Shown one piece after another: positions 20,168 to 26,100 of a stretch of 64,000 nt of DNA (position 1 is its first letter; each line of letters starts with the position of its first letter). Both the position numbers and the translations under genes were made by a program. A model generated the notes under the pieces. That model was not told the DNA's origin, ran no database searches, and was given only the letters and a program-made list of their open reading frames with translations. Origin of the DNA: Haliotis rubra (Eukaryota); assembly GCF_003918875.1 (NCBI RefSeq), contig NW_025765980.1, forward strand, positions 1,240,001 through 1,304,000, given 5' to 3'.

Positions 20168-23100
20168 TTAGGAGTCTAGTCGCGCCAATTCACTGGTGTA
20201 TATGCCAATGCTCTCCATGTCATAGAGTACGAAGTAGATCTGCTTCAGCGAGCTCGTCATCACTGTCATGAAGTAGTTGCTGATAGCACGGAGGATGATC
20301 TGAGCTGCCGTCTGTTTCGGGAAGCCAGCACTAGGATGCAAGAACACATACAGTGAGAAGTAACGTATCTGTGGTTTGTGAGTGTAGCAGGACAACACAA
20401 AAGTCATGCATTCATATGAGGAGCTCTACAAGATGTTTTAGTTTTAGGTGAGGTGAAATTGGGTTTAATGTCGTGCTTGAGAATATTTCGCTCATATGAC
20501 GACGTGCATGCGTTTGTGTATGTGTGGCTGCTTGTACTAGCCCAGACGTAAGCTGGTTTTATAGTGCTAGCCTACTGAGATACCATGCCGCAGTGAAGCA
20601 TGGATACCCCACTCAGACACATTATACTGACTCCGAGCCGACCAGTCCTTGTTGTACCCATTAATGCCGAGCGCCAGGCAGGGACCAACAAGTACCATAT
20701 TTTAAGATCTTTTGGTATGACGCGGTCGGGGATCGAACCCGTGACCTTCCACTCTCCGGGCGGACGCTTTTTAGTTTTAGTGTCAGAACACTAGGACAAC
20801 TGGTAACTTTAGTGATAGATGTTAAATTTGACACTGTTTGCTTGCTGACAGTTTAACGCCACTCACAGCAATATTCCAGCTATATAATGGTGGTCTGAAT
20901 ATAATCAAGTCTGGACCAGACAATCCAGTGCTTTACATCATGGGCATCAAGCTACACAACTTGGATCAAATGGCAGGCATCAAGTATTGATTGATTTTTG
21001 TTGTTTTACGCCGCAGTCAGCAATATTCCAGCTATATGGCGACGGTCTGTAAATAATTGAGTCTGGACCACACAATCCAGTGATCAACATCATGAGCATT
21101 GTTTTACGCAATTGGGATACGATGACATGTCAACCAAGTCAGCAAGCCTTTCCGCCCAATCCCGTTTATCGCCTCTTACGACAAGCATGGGTTGCTGAAG
21201 AGAGATTCTGACCTGGATTTTCACGGGTCAGCATCAAGTAAGTTAGAGCCAAACCACATGATTCTATTTGTTGCCCTTTACAACAAATATAGTTGAATTC
21301 TAAACATAAGCATGATATAGTGGATCTTCACAGGAGAACTATTTTATTATGGCAAAGTCATAACTGTGAGTGAGCTATTAACAGCATGTCAGTTAAATCA
21401 TGAAATGTAATGAAAGTTCAATGTGGAAGAAAAGCTTGGAGGTATTAACTACTTTGGTAAAACCAAAAGACATGGGTGTGGTGCTGACAAAACAAGGAAT
21501 CAGAATCCAAGGTTATATGGGATACAATCCCATGATTACTGGATTCTGGCAAAGCTAAGGGAGGCAAATAAGCAACAATAAATTGACTGATAAATACATT
21601 TGCTTTAGGAAATGAAATTGTTTGATGTAAATGAGCAAAATGTAACCATGCAGCTGCAATGAAAAGAAATCTGTTCAGCTGTGATCAGTCAAAAAATCAA
21701 AAATAGCAAAAAAATATTTCCCATTGTCCTACATTGGAAGGTATTTGGAGAGACCATCGGCACTGACAGGTGTTTAAGGAGGCCAACATCAGAGGGTTTA
21801 GGAAGGCCAACAGCAGGCGGGGTCCAGAGAGGCTAACAGCAGAAAGGGTTCAGAGAGACCTACAGCAGGCATGATCCAGAGAGACCATCAACGTTTATTG
21901 AGTTCAGAGAGGCCAATAGTGGAAGGGATTTAGATAGGCCTTCTTAACATAATGTGTTCATTCCAGTCATCAGCAGAGTTATATTGTGAAAGTTCACCAC
22001 AAAGCCAGGATGTTCGGCAAGATAATCAATACCAGAATGATTTCAGGGATGTTTTGCACACAAGCAGGGCTAAAGTAGGTCACTTGCCATCATAGGGTGG
22101 TTTCAGAGATTTCATCATCATTAGGTGTTTGGGGAAGTCATCATCATTAGGTGTTCGGGAAGGTCATAATCATCAAAGTGGTTATGAGAGGTCATCAACA
22201 ACAGGTGTTCAGAGAGGTGTTAGTGCTTGCTAGGTACCAACCAATTAGTAGTTGTCCAAACACGTCATCAACATCAGAAAGGGATCAGATGAGAAGTTGT
22301 CTGCACCAGAAGGTAGGGGAGCGGCAGGTGTTAGTGCAAGTCAAGAACCAACTAAACAATGTTAACAGTCTACGCTACAGGTATAGGTAACGGATGTGCC
22401 TTACCGTCCACTTCCAACAGAAGGGAACGCCAGACTTTTCAGGTTTTTCTCATCAGCCAAAGTTAGACAGTTCTTGACTGCTTTTTCCAGCAATTGCTGC
22501 GGGTTATCCATTTTCCACGTGGGGCCGTTACAATGGATAACATACTTTGCTGGGAAGTGGAAGCCTTGACTGATCACAGCTGGACAAACAAACAACTAAA
22601 GTCAATCCATGTCAACAACACAACACAGACGGCAGCATCAAGTTCTGCAGCTGACTCTGGCATTGTCCATGGAGCGTAAACATCATGGATTACAATTTGG
22701 ATTCTCTATACCACCTCCAAGATGCAGAACTAGAGGCATTACCTGTGTTGAGTATTTCTAGGTTCACGTATAGACAATGACAACAGTGGTATGAAAAACC
22801 TATGGGTACCCAATAACAGTACTTTTCGATACCTGACATTAAATGACAAATCTCAAAAACAGGTTCTAAACATTGATTGCATCTCCAAGGATGGACTTTG
22901 TTCATATTGAGTTGAAGCATATGTCTCAATGGACATGTTATTATAAATTCTATGAAAAGATATATGATCTGAAGACAATGACATATTCAGTGCTGTGAGC
23001 ATCATCCACTGTTGTCAGCCTATAACACGACCAGTAACGGAAACTCACTTCCCACTCCCGATGGAAGGTATAGCTAAAGACTTGAGGTTTTTCTCATCAG

Positions 23101-26100
23101 CGAGAGTAAGAATATTCTTGACAGCTTTCTCTAGCTGCTGCTGCGAGTTGGCCGAGCCCCAAGATGGGCTGTTCACATGGACAACATACTTGGCAGGGAA
23201 ATTACGCCCTGGGCACATGGCCGCTGAAATGTATAATGTTATTATGCTGACAATAGTACTTGGTTTAAGATTCACATTTAATACCACATGGAGTTAATGC
23301 TTGTGTTAAGGTTTGACAATAATCAACTCAAGGTGTATCAAAGGAAGGAATAGGTAGTATTGTCTTCAGATATTAGATCTGCACAACAGATAACCCAGGT
23401 CACCAGTATGACAATACTAAGGTCACCAGTATGATAATACTAACCCCCTGCAGTGTCAATGGGTCTAAGCCAGGTCACCAGTATGACACTACTAAGGTCA
23501 CTGGTATGACAATACTAAGGTCACCACTATGACAATCCTAACCCCCTACTGTATCAATGGGTCTAAGCCAGGTCACCAGTATGACAATACTATTACTAAG
23601 GTCACTGGTATGACAATACTAAGGTCACCAGTATGATAATACTAACCCCCTGCAGTGTCAATGGGTCTAAGCCAGGTCACCAGTATGACAATACTATTAC
23701 TAAGGTCACTGGTATGGCAATATTAAGGTCACTGGTATGACAATACTAAGGTCACCACTATGATAATACTAAGGTCCCAGTATGATAATACTAACCCCCC
23801 GGCAGTATCAATGGGTCTAACGGAGGTCACCAGTATGACAATCCTAAACCCCTACTGTATCAATGGATCTAACCCAGGCCACCAGTATGACAATACTAAG
23901 GTCACCACTATGAAAATACTAAGGTCCCAGTATGACAATACTAACCCTCTGCAGTATCAATGGGTCTAACCCAGGCCACCAGTATGACAATACTAAGGTC
24001 ACCACTATGATAATACTAATAATGATACTAAGGTCAATACTAAGGTCACTGTATGACAATACTAACCCTCTGCAGTATCAATGGGTCTAACGTAGGCCAC
24101 CAGTATGACAATACTAAGGTCACCACTATGACAATACTAAGGTCACCAGTATGACAATCCTAACCCCCTACTGTATCAATGGATCTAACCCAGGTAACCA
24201 GTATGACAATACTAAGGTCACCAATAAGACAATACTAAGATCACAAGCATGACAATACTAAGGTCACAAGTATGAGAAATACTAACCCCCTACTGTAGCA
24301 ATGGATCTAACCCAGGCCACCAGTATGACAATACTAAGGTCACCACTATGACAATACTAAGGTCACCAGTATGACAATCCTAACCCCCTACTGTATCAAT
24401 GGATCTAACCCAGGTCACCAGTATGACAATACTAAGGTCACCAATAAGGTCACAATACTAAGATCACTGTATCATCAATGGATCTAACCCAGGTAACCAG
24501 TATGACAATACTAAGGTCACCAATAAGTCAATACTAAGATAACAAGTATGACAATACTAAGGTCACCACTATGACAATACTAAGGTCACCAGTATGACAA
24601 TCCTAACCCCCTACTGCATCAATGGATCTAACCCAGGTAACCAGTATGACAATACTAAGGTCACCAATAAGACAATACTAAGATCACCAATAAGACAATA
24701 CTAAGGTCACAAGTATGAGAAATACTTACCCCCTGCAGTATCAATGGGTCCGTGGGCTGTTTGAAGGTTGTCTATCTCCTGACGGAATTCCTTTCCTCCA
24801 GCCTTCTCCATTGCCTGACCTGAACACAGCAGACATATTGTGTCAAGTATGACAGACACATGTACATTACCCATGCATGTTTGTAGATAATACAGCGCAA
24901 CAGATACCTAACCCAACAGGGAGTTATCACACCCTCTCACACAGACAGATGGACAGACAGACACCTCATTCCTCCACTAAACCTAACCCAACAGAGAGTT
25001 ATCACACCCTCTCACACAGACAGATGGACAGACAGACACCTCATTCCTCCACTAAACCTAACCCAACAGGGAGTTATCACACCCTCTCACACAGACAGAT
25101 GGACAGACAGACACCTCATTCCTCCACTAAACCTAACCCAACAGAGAGTTATCACACCCTCTCACACAGACAGATGGACAGACAGACACCTCATTCCTCC
25201 ACTAAACCTAACCCAACAGGGAGCTATCACACCCTCTCACACAGACAGATGGACAGACAGACACCTCATTCCTCCACTTCCTAACCCAACAGGAGTTATC
25301 ACACCCTCTCACACAGACAGATGGACAGACAGACACCTCATTCCTCCACTAAACCTAACCCAACAGGGAGTTATCACACCCTCTCACACAGACAGATGGA
25401 CAGACAGATTCTTCCACAGACCAGACACCTCACACAGACATGGACAGACAGACACCTCATTCCTCCACTAAACCTAACCCAACAGGGAGTTATCACACCC
25501 TCTCACACAGACAGATAGACAGACAGACAGACAGACACCTCATTCCTCCACTAAACCTAACCCAACAGGGAGTTATCACACCCTCTCACACAGACAGATG
25601 GACAGACAGACAGACACCTCATTCCTCCACTAAACCTAACCCAACAGGGATTCCTCCACTAAACCTCAAATGGATATACAGTCAAATCCCGTTGAGTCGA
25701 AACGCTGGGGACCAAGTAATAAATTCGACGTTTCCATGTTTTCAAGACATAGGTATGTCTATGAGGGTAGAAAAAAAGATGATCCAGTCCTAATTCCTCC
25801 GCCTAAGCATTTGTTTATCTAATGATATCCATATCACTAATAGGGGCACCTTATCAGTTCCAGTCTGATTAGCACAGACAGTGATTTCCGTAAAATCACT
25901 AATCTGCCTTTTGAACTCACCCGTCAATGGCGGAAAGGTGTGAGCCTCGCTGGTTTGTTAATTGGATCAGTTTGCTACACCAATCAACTTCTCATTGACT
26001 GACTTCGAGCTTATGTATACAAGATTGCTGTTGTTTGAATCTCATGGGGCCAAATTTCCTTCTCGAGTCATCGTGTGTATTTATGAGACGAATTCGTGTA

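Follow-up and report, generated by a model that had tools for sequence, protein, structure and literature searches.

How many proteins can be made from a single invertebrate macroH2A gene, and which part of the protein is varied? This question is raised by a 64,000-nt stretch of the genome of the abalone Haliotis rubra (contig NW_025765980.1, positions 1,240,001 to 1,304,000; hereafter the window, whose own coordinates are used throughout), in which a gene for the histone variant macroH2A on the minus strand contains two adjacent, similar copies of one macrodomain exon, here called 7A and 7B. With a probability of roughly 85%, these copies are a mutually exclusive exon pair of old lophotrochozoan origin, both members of which have been maintained since the duplication that produced them and by which one gene gives two proteins. 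The pair is not confined to abalone but is common to molluscs, annelids, nemerteans and a brachiopod. It is a second, independent pair of macrodomain exons, probably mutually exclusive, that occurs in four phyla or more; the ligand-binding loop that it alters is not the one altered by the macroH2A1.1/1.2 pair of vertebrates.

The exon pair and its two products

The gene model has nine exon positions, exon 7 occurring twice, and consists of the following features (a slash marks a splice junction in all sequences quoted):

20168..32882, minus strand: macroH2A gene from ATG to stop, with H2A histone fold, basic linker and macrodomain, 384 aa
32711..32882, minus strand: exon 1, with the ATG at 32882 and the first part of the histone fold
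31231..31337, minus strand: exon 2
29259..29519, minus strand: exon 3, the end of the histone fold and the lysine-rich linker
28689..28784, minus strand: exon 4, in which the macrodomain begins
26236..26326, minus strand: exon 5, DAIVHPTN...GGEVG, ligand loop 1; GC donor (G/GCAAGT); counterpart of the vertebrate 1.1/1.2 alternative exon
24730..24819, minus strand: exon 6
23224..24729, minus strand: intron 6, a minisatellite almost throughout
23049..23223, minus strand: exon 7A, 175 nt, HVNSPSWG...KNIL...AIPSIGSG; ends AA/, the split codon giving Asn
22580..23048, minus strand: intron between 7A and 7B, 469 nt
22405..22579, minus strand: exon 7B, 175 nt, HCNGPTWK...KNCL...AFPSVGSG; ends CG/, the split codon giving Arg
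20168..20330, minus strand: exon 8, from AGFPKQ... to the stop, completing ligand loop 2

The spliced product unites an H2A fold, a lysine-rich linker and a macrodomain in one polypeptide, as expected of a macroH2A; its close orthologues (95-98% identical) carry the Pfam domains PF00125, PF16211 and PF01661, and its best match in the PDB is macroH2A1.1 (8e-78). When 7B is used, the product is identical at 384 of 384 residues to the RefSeq protein XP_046566530.1, core histone macro-H2A.1-like isoform X1 [Haliotis rubra], which validates the whole gene model, including the GC-AG intron after exon 5. The GC donor of this intron (26230-26240, minus strand; GAAGTAG/GCAAGT), which the RefSeq protein uses, has an alternative: a GT lies 4 bases upstream and an AG 5 bases into exon 6, and their joint use would give an in-frame product three residues shorter, lacking VGQ of the GGEVGQ ligand loop.

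Exons 7A and 7B are adjacent, homologous and equal in length, are both entered in phase 1, have open frames and AG/GT splice sites of their own (tttcag/CGGCCA...TGGGAA/gtgagt for 7A and gtccag/CTGTGA...TGGACG/gtaagg for 7B), and thus form a tandem-duplicated exon pair. They are identical at 116 of 175 nucleotides (66%) and at 39 of 57 whole codons at the amino acid level, or 40 of 59 with both split codons included; synonymous differences are found in 19 of the 39 codons that specify the same residue. The introns flanking the two copies are unrelated in sequence, the sole direct repeat there being that of the exons themselves (22408-22556 and 23052-23200). In the spliced model, either copy alone gives a protein of 384 aa, and the two full-length isoforms differ at about 19 residues. 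The reading frame is lost both when the two copies are joined (stop at codon 348, 123 nt upstream of the last junction) and when exon 7 is skipped entirely (stop at codon 294). The equal length and phase of the two exons, their splice sites and open frames, the 40 of 59 identical residues, the synonymous differences, the unrelated introns and the effect of each combination on the frame had been described in the first-pass annotation of the sequence, and all of these observations held up on direct reading and by script. The same annotation took the GGEVG exon to be single and 1.1-like, and in agreement with it, a tblastn search of the window with the protein detected one copy of exon 5 and no second copy of any other macroH2A exon, while the product scored 263.6 bits against macroH2A1.1 and 234.5 bits against macroH2A1.2 in the PDB.

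Mutually exclusive use of the two copies, also proposed earlier, is indirectly supported by two kinds of record. First, RefSeq contains pairs of isoforms, X1 and X2, that differ in exon 7 only, in three other Haliotis species and nine further species (13 species when H. rubra is counted by X1 only):

Haliotis: H. rufescens, H. cracherodii, H. asinina
scallops: Pecten maximus, Mizuhopecten, Argopecten
oyster: Ostrea edulis
chiton: Liolophura
other gastropod: Gigantopelta
nemerteans: Lineus, Tubulanus
brachiopod: Lingula (protein records only)

Second, single-copy products are encoded on assembled contigs from public sequencing runs. Two full-length ark-clam proteins, one with A only (P0175) and one with B only (P0165), are near-identical outside exon 7 and are encoded on contigs of 1.8 and 4.7 kb, and the full oyster A isoform is encoded on dozens of contigs of 1.4-2.9 kb. 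As these contigs are intron-less and the gene has eight introns, they most likely derive from spliced mRNA. In addition, several public gene models from outside RefSeq join both copies of exon 7 (Tegillarca P0153, Paralvinella P0179 and the 452-aa Crassostrea gigas P0356), and the model of Strigamia, P0157, has one full copy plus part of another. Such models are annotation errors caused by a mutually exclusive pair; since three of them join both copies, the genomes of Tegillarca, Paralvinella and C. gigas must hold both.

Distribution and age of the duplication

Homologues were collected by searching a representative library with a profile of both exons and then onward from full-length matches. 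Tandems in the order A then B were found in the genomic DNA of the nemertean Lineus (L004), the annelid Capitella (L005), H. rufescens (L007) and the scallop Pecten (L008); in all four, both copies are 175 nt long, A ends AA/gt (Asn) and B ends CG/gt (Arg). On the other hand, exon 7 was single in six of six non-lophotrochozoan loci, namely those of the octocoral Xenia, the hemichordate Saccoglossus, the amphioxus Branchiostoma, the scorpion Centruroides, Priapulus and Limulus, where it has the same 175-nt size and phase. Just past the single exon 7 of Saccoglossus (L001, 13381-13413) lies an in-frame echo of its last 11 codons (SVAVPSIGSGE), perhaps the product of a small, partial duplication at the 3' end of the exon.

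Across the four phyla, the two types can be distinguished at the following residues, numbered as in human macroH2A1.1:

position 273: A, V in 12/12; B, C in 15/17
position 275: A, S in 10/12; B, G in 15/17
position 279: A, Gly; B, Lys or Ser
position 294: A, V or I in 12/12; B, C in 15/17
position 308: A, I, L or V in 12/12; B, F in 13/17
position 312: A, Gly or Ser; B, always Gly
position 315: A, N in 8/9; B, R in 16/16

A stretch resembling the A type (VIHVHSPGW...SISSGHAGFPK) also occurs in two further proteins, P0047 (410 aa) and P0054 (468 aa), whose macrodomain is 50-60% identical to that of the window product. In both, the macrodomain is fused to a long N-terminal stretch that looks like a coiled coil, without a histone fold, and they look like members of a non-histone paralogue family.

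A maximum-likelihood tree was built from 61 exon-7 peptides. In it, one branch with support of 93/88 (90/88 in a smaller tree with fewer rows) parted the 18 A copies of lophotrochozoans from their 20 B copies, and the A and B labels required one change in all 200 bootstrap trees examined. Within Haliotis, synonymous divergence (dS) between 7A and 7B is 2-3, and about 3 in the window itself, a value at saturation. One duplication, preceding the divergence of molluscs, annelids, nemerteans and brachiopods, is therefore well supported.

It is possible, although unlikely, that the duplication predates Lophotrochozoa, such that an ancestor of bilaterians or of protostomes already had A and B and most lineages kept one of them, a B-like exon in chordates, horseshoe crabs and insects and an A-like exon in hemichordates, echinoderms and priapulids. 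In both trees, B copies side with chordates, Limulus, Pycnogonum and insects, while A copies side with cnidarians, ambulacrarians and Priapulus, and a tree constrained to unite all lophotrochozoan copies in one clade is worse by 13.5 log-likelihood units. In the Strigamia model, a full copy with a terminal Asn precedes a partial one with a terminal Arg, which matches the A-then-B order. Furthermore, the B macrodomain is nearer to human macroH2A1.1 by score (263.6 bits, against 249.5 for A) and the A macrodomain is nearer to the Capsaspora macrodomain 7NY6 (187.9 bits, against 177.7 for B). However, a duplication restricted to Lophotrochozoa was not rejected by the approximately unbiased (AU) test (p = 0.174), in an alignment of only 58 columns, and the labels A-like and B-like may reflect a few convergent sites outside Lophotrochozoa, where mosaics occur: HVNSP, KNCL and SSGR in echinoderms, HV and KNCL in insects, and HC and KNIL in arachnids. 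A search of arthropods from the Strigamia model likewise revealed single, mosaic sequences only and no X1/X2 pair in exon 7. As all six non-lophotrochozoan loci are single-copy, an older duplication would also need many independent losses.

Wherever its root lies, an origin separate from that of the vertebrate macroH2A1.1/1.2 pair, as suggested in the first-pass annotation, is supported, because a different exon was duplicated and because exon 7 is single in amphioxus, Saccoglossus and vertebrates.

Maintenance and probable exclusive use of the two copies

What could ensure that exactly one copy is used? Two common explanations do not apply here: steric hindrance is excluded by the 469 nt of intron between the copies, and incompatibility of U2 and U12 sites by the fact that both introns are U2-type GT-AG introns (donors GTGAGT and GTAAGG, with AG acceptors). 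At the protein level, the 175-nt length would itself enforce the choice of one of two through the reading frame. The exon-junction rule for nonsense-mediated decay was established in mammals and is assumed here for molluscs; by this rule, transcripts with both copies, whose stop lies 123 nt before the last junction, would be likely targets of decay.

The same frame logic could imply a different function, in which 7A and 7B are not strictly exclusive and regulated double inclusion or skipping acts as a switch that controls the level of macroH2A through unproductive splicing, the two proteins being secondary. Double inclusion and double skipping both give premature stops, the 469-nt intron should be spliceable between U2-type donors, and nothing in the sequence forbids double inclusion. 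We nevertheless consider this improbable: the conserved type-specific residues of both copies, a conservation that spans more than 500 million years, show that both proteins are under selection, and no genuine in-frame double inclusion was found among the annotated or assembled products, the models with both copies being mis-joined.

In abalone, an additional element may contribute. The 3' splice site of 7B can pair with a segment of the next intron:

22560..22595, minus strand: duplex arm 1, 3' splice site and polypyrimidine tract of 7B
21665..21700, minus strand: duplex arm 2, in the intron between 7B and exon 8, 870 nt downstream

The duplex comprises 21 nt at 95% complementarity, with an energy of -37.6 kcal/mol in H. 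rubra, compared with -13.6 +/- 4.0 for 770 other partners. H. rufescens has the same duplex (-37.0 kcal/mol, arms 864 nt apart), in which the intronic arm is identical at 20 of 20 nt within an intron that is about 67% identical around it, and in neither species does any other segment of the pre-mRNA pair better with the 7B acceptor (z about -5.2 to -5.6). By masking this acceptor, the duplex may favour splicing from 7A to exon 8 and so prevent double inclusion.

Other candidate elements were less convincing. No docking site common to 7A and 7B, and no docking-site and selector architecture across phyla, was found. Complementary segments bracket 7A in H. rubra (22958-22979 and 23359-23380; 22 nt, 86%), but they were rejected as a regulatory element, as the upstream arm is not conserved in H. 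rufescens, where no such pair is among the longest 5 of 17 inverted repeats. Strong partners of the 7A acceptor lie at different places in the two abalones and were treated as chance. A search of the window against Rfam at gathering thresholds gave no match.

Two further structures of these introns deserve mention. The intron that separates the two copies contains a local hairpin 56-158 nt upstream of the acceptor of 7B (22635-22652 and 22720-22737; 18 nt, 83% complementary); it has a counterpart in H. rufescens (L007, 9684-9705 and 9757-9778; 22 nt, 86%) and could involve the branch-point region. In the minisatellite of intron 6 (23224-24729), a higher-order unit copies the last ~18 nt of exon 6 together with its 5' splice site. 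The true donor of exon 6 is CCATTGATACTGCAGGGG/GTAAGTAT at 24747-24722, and 10 further degenerate copies carry GTTAGT or GTTAGG. The corresponding array of H. rufescens (L007, 7478-8855) has 27 copies with a strict 52-nt period, many of them with GGTAATT as in its real donor. The minisatellite is thus an array of pseudo-donors directly upstream of the alternative exon pair.

Comparison of the two abalones also bears on whether both copies have been maintained:

exon 7A, H. rubra vs H. rufescens: 12 synonymous changes, 1 replacement; omega 0.020; DNA identity 93%
exon 7B, H. rubra vs H. rufescens: 7 synonymous changes, 1 replacement; omega 0.032; DNA identity 95%
intron between 7A and 7B, H. 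rubra vs H. rufescens: DNA identity 69%

These values, together with the type-specific residues kept in four phyla, support strong purifying selection on both copies, as had been anticipated from the H. rubra sequence, for which a dN/dS ratio was proposed as a check. It is very improbable that one copy is an unused relic or pseudo-exon, or that the pair is an assembly artefact, so that the gene makes one protein. A-type contigs do look commoner than B-type contigs in the search lists, and one isoform may be minor; yet both copies are open with canonical splice sites, their omega is 0.02-0.03 against a dS of 0.23-0.39, their type-specific residues are conserved across four phyla, and each is used alone in RefSeq isoforms and intron-less contigs, while copies that are just 66% identical in DNA and occur in the same order in independent assemblies do not resemble an artefact. 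Least probable of all is an independent duplication of exon 7 in each phylum followed by convergence, for although tandem duplications of exons are a recurrent event in other gene families, and that of Strigamia may be a further example, the A copies of four phyla group together, as do the B copies (one branch with 93/88 support, one change in 100% of bootstraps), and Lineus, Capitella, Haliotis and Pecten share the A-then-B order and the AA/ and CG/ ends.

Apart from the macroH2A gene, the window contains several repeats. The largest is a satellite at 43127-48526 (5.4 kb, 111 copies of a 49-nt unit), and smaller arrays lie at 24906-25408 in intron 5 (75-nt unit, 6.7 copies), at 57072-57733 (G-rich 18-nt unit, 37 copies, which accounts for a strong GC skew there) and at 63515-64000 (31-nt unit, 15.6 copies). 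The window has 452 N in total, including a run at about 29700-29870, in the intron between exons 2 and 3, that touches no exon.

Ligand loop 2 and relation to known systems

What the choice between 7A and 7B could change in the protein may be judged from sequence alignment with the human homologue. Exon 7 aligns without gaps with residues 257-315 of human macroH2A1.1, and the alignment of the product with the 1.1-type crystal structures 1ZR3 and 3IID is also gap-free, with no 3-residue insertion in loop 1. The exon ends where the GSG-x-x-GFP loop begins, a loop that touches the diphosphate of ADP-ribose in macrodomains generally; Ser275, one of the positions that differ between the types, we take to be a ligand contact in the human complex. 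In both isoforms, equivalents of Gly224 (GGEVG, exon 5) and Gly314 (the GSG that ends both 7A and 7B) are present, so that with both glycines and no loop 1 insertion each has the sequence features of an ADP-ribose-binding, 1.1-type macrodomain. Gly224 and Gly314 are reported to be the two glycines needed for the binding of poly(ADP-ribose) (PAR) (PMC6277393).

Because both isoforms keep these two glycines, the choice is unlikely to act as an on/off switch like that between 1.1 and 1.2. Both are predicted from sequence to retain the residues that bind ADP-ribose, and the type-specific changes would lie in or beside the pocket, at human positions 273, 275, 294, 308 and 315. Exon choice would then tune ligand affinity or partner binding in a graded way, without abolishing binding, and tuning of this kind is probably its effect. 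As to the earlier proposal that exon duplication diversified the ADP-ribose pocket, this is still something we infer. More doubtful than an ancestral pair by itself is its combination with a marked functional difference, that is, a pair already present in the ancestor of protostomes or bilaterians, of which chordates kept the B-like exon, together with A and B macrodomains that would show marked differences either in partner binding or in their affinity for ADP-ribose or PAR. If this were true, lophotrochozoans would have had a splice-controlled link between chromatin and the metabolism of nicotinamide adenine dinucleotide (NAD) for more than 500 million years, with ligand loop 2 in the role that loop 1 has in the vertebrate switch.

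Several points weigh against the reading of 7A/7B as an old, mutually exclusive pair with two maintained products, or limit it. Use of both exons in Haliotis is taken from isoforms predicted by RefSeq, and the mRNA origin of the ark-clam and oyster contigs from their absence of introns. The mapping of the pocket would hold to the extent that alignment to human macroH2A1.1 and general knowledge of macrodomains can be transferred. A scan for partners that mask the acceptor revealed nothing comparable in Pecten, Lineus and Capitella (z -2.6 to -3.6), so the abalone duplex cannot be a general mechanism and is at best a lineage-specific refinement. Regarding novelty, the first-pass annotation knew of no description of such exons in an invertebrate macroH2A, and no prior description of the pair was found in the searchable literature either, which covers the field in part, so that an earlier report is possible; the isoforms themselves do exist in automated RefSeq annotation.

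The field has generally taken macrodomain splicing as a vertebrate invention and invertebrate macroH2A as a single, 1.1-like protein. According to a recent paper on macroH2A, the alternatively spliced exon arose with the vertebrates (PMC12551714). A survey of mollusc histones does not mention isoforms (PMC12210499), and a survey of annelid histones kept one transcript per histone gene by design, protein-changing splicing being deemed rare in histones (PMC12153100). As a natural experiment, the exon pair can show which parts of the pocket are varied by evolution. Studies of the expression or localisation of mollusc or annelid macroH2A with one sequence average two proteins, and several public gene models, those in which both copies are joined, should be corrected. 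As the A and B forms differ at only about 19 residues, they can be compared directly.

Among existing records, the macro-H2A.1-like isoforms X1 and X2 in RefSeq for molluscs, nemerteans and Lingula are the same two products as the 7A and 7B isoforms; as automated output, they state nothing on paralogy, exclusivity, age or the distinction from the vertebrate pair. In architecture, the abalone exons resemble the clusters of mutually exclusive exons in myosin heavy chain, Dscam and SLC25A3 (reviewed in PMC5740500), where adjacent homologous exons of equal length and phase likewise lie inside a folded domain and the frame demands exactly one of them. The abalone cluster differs in having two members, in belonging to a histone variant, and in that no docking-site and selector arrangement shared across phyla was found for it.

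Of the known systems, vertebrate macroH2A1.1/1.2 (gene MACROH2A1, formerly H2AFY) stands closest. Both cases concern the same gene family and the same domain, with two homologous exons inside the folded macrodomain whose varied segment contributes to the ADP-ribose site, and in both one gene gives two full-length histone variants. The vertebrate pair varies the loop 1 exon (GGEVG, Gly224), whose equivalent in abalone, exon 5, is single, whereas the exon varied in abalone lies two exons downstream of the GGEVG exon, corresponds to human residues 257-315 and ends at loop 2. The abalone-type pair is lophotrochozoan and is absent from the amphioxus locus and the vertebrate proteins examined. Finally, in vertebrate macroH2A1.2 the critical glycines are missing and binding is abolished by a 3-residue insertion (PMC6277393), while the two abalone forms both have the two glycines and are equal in length.

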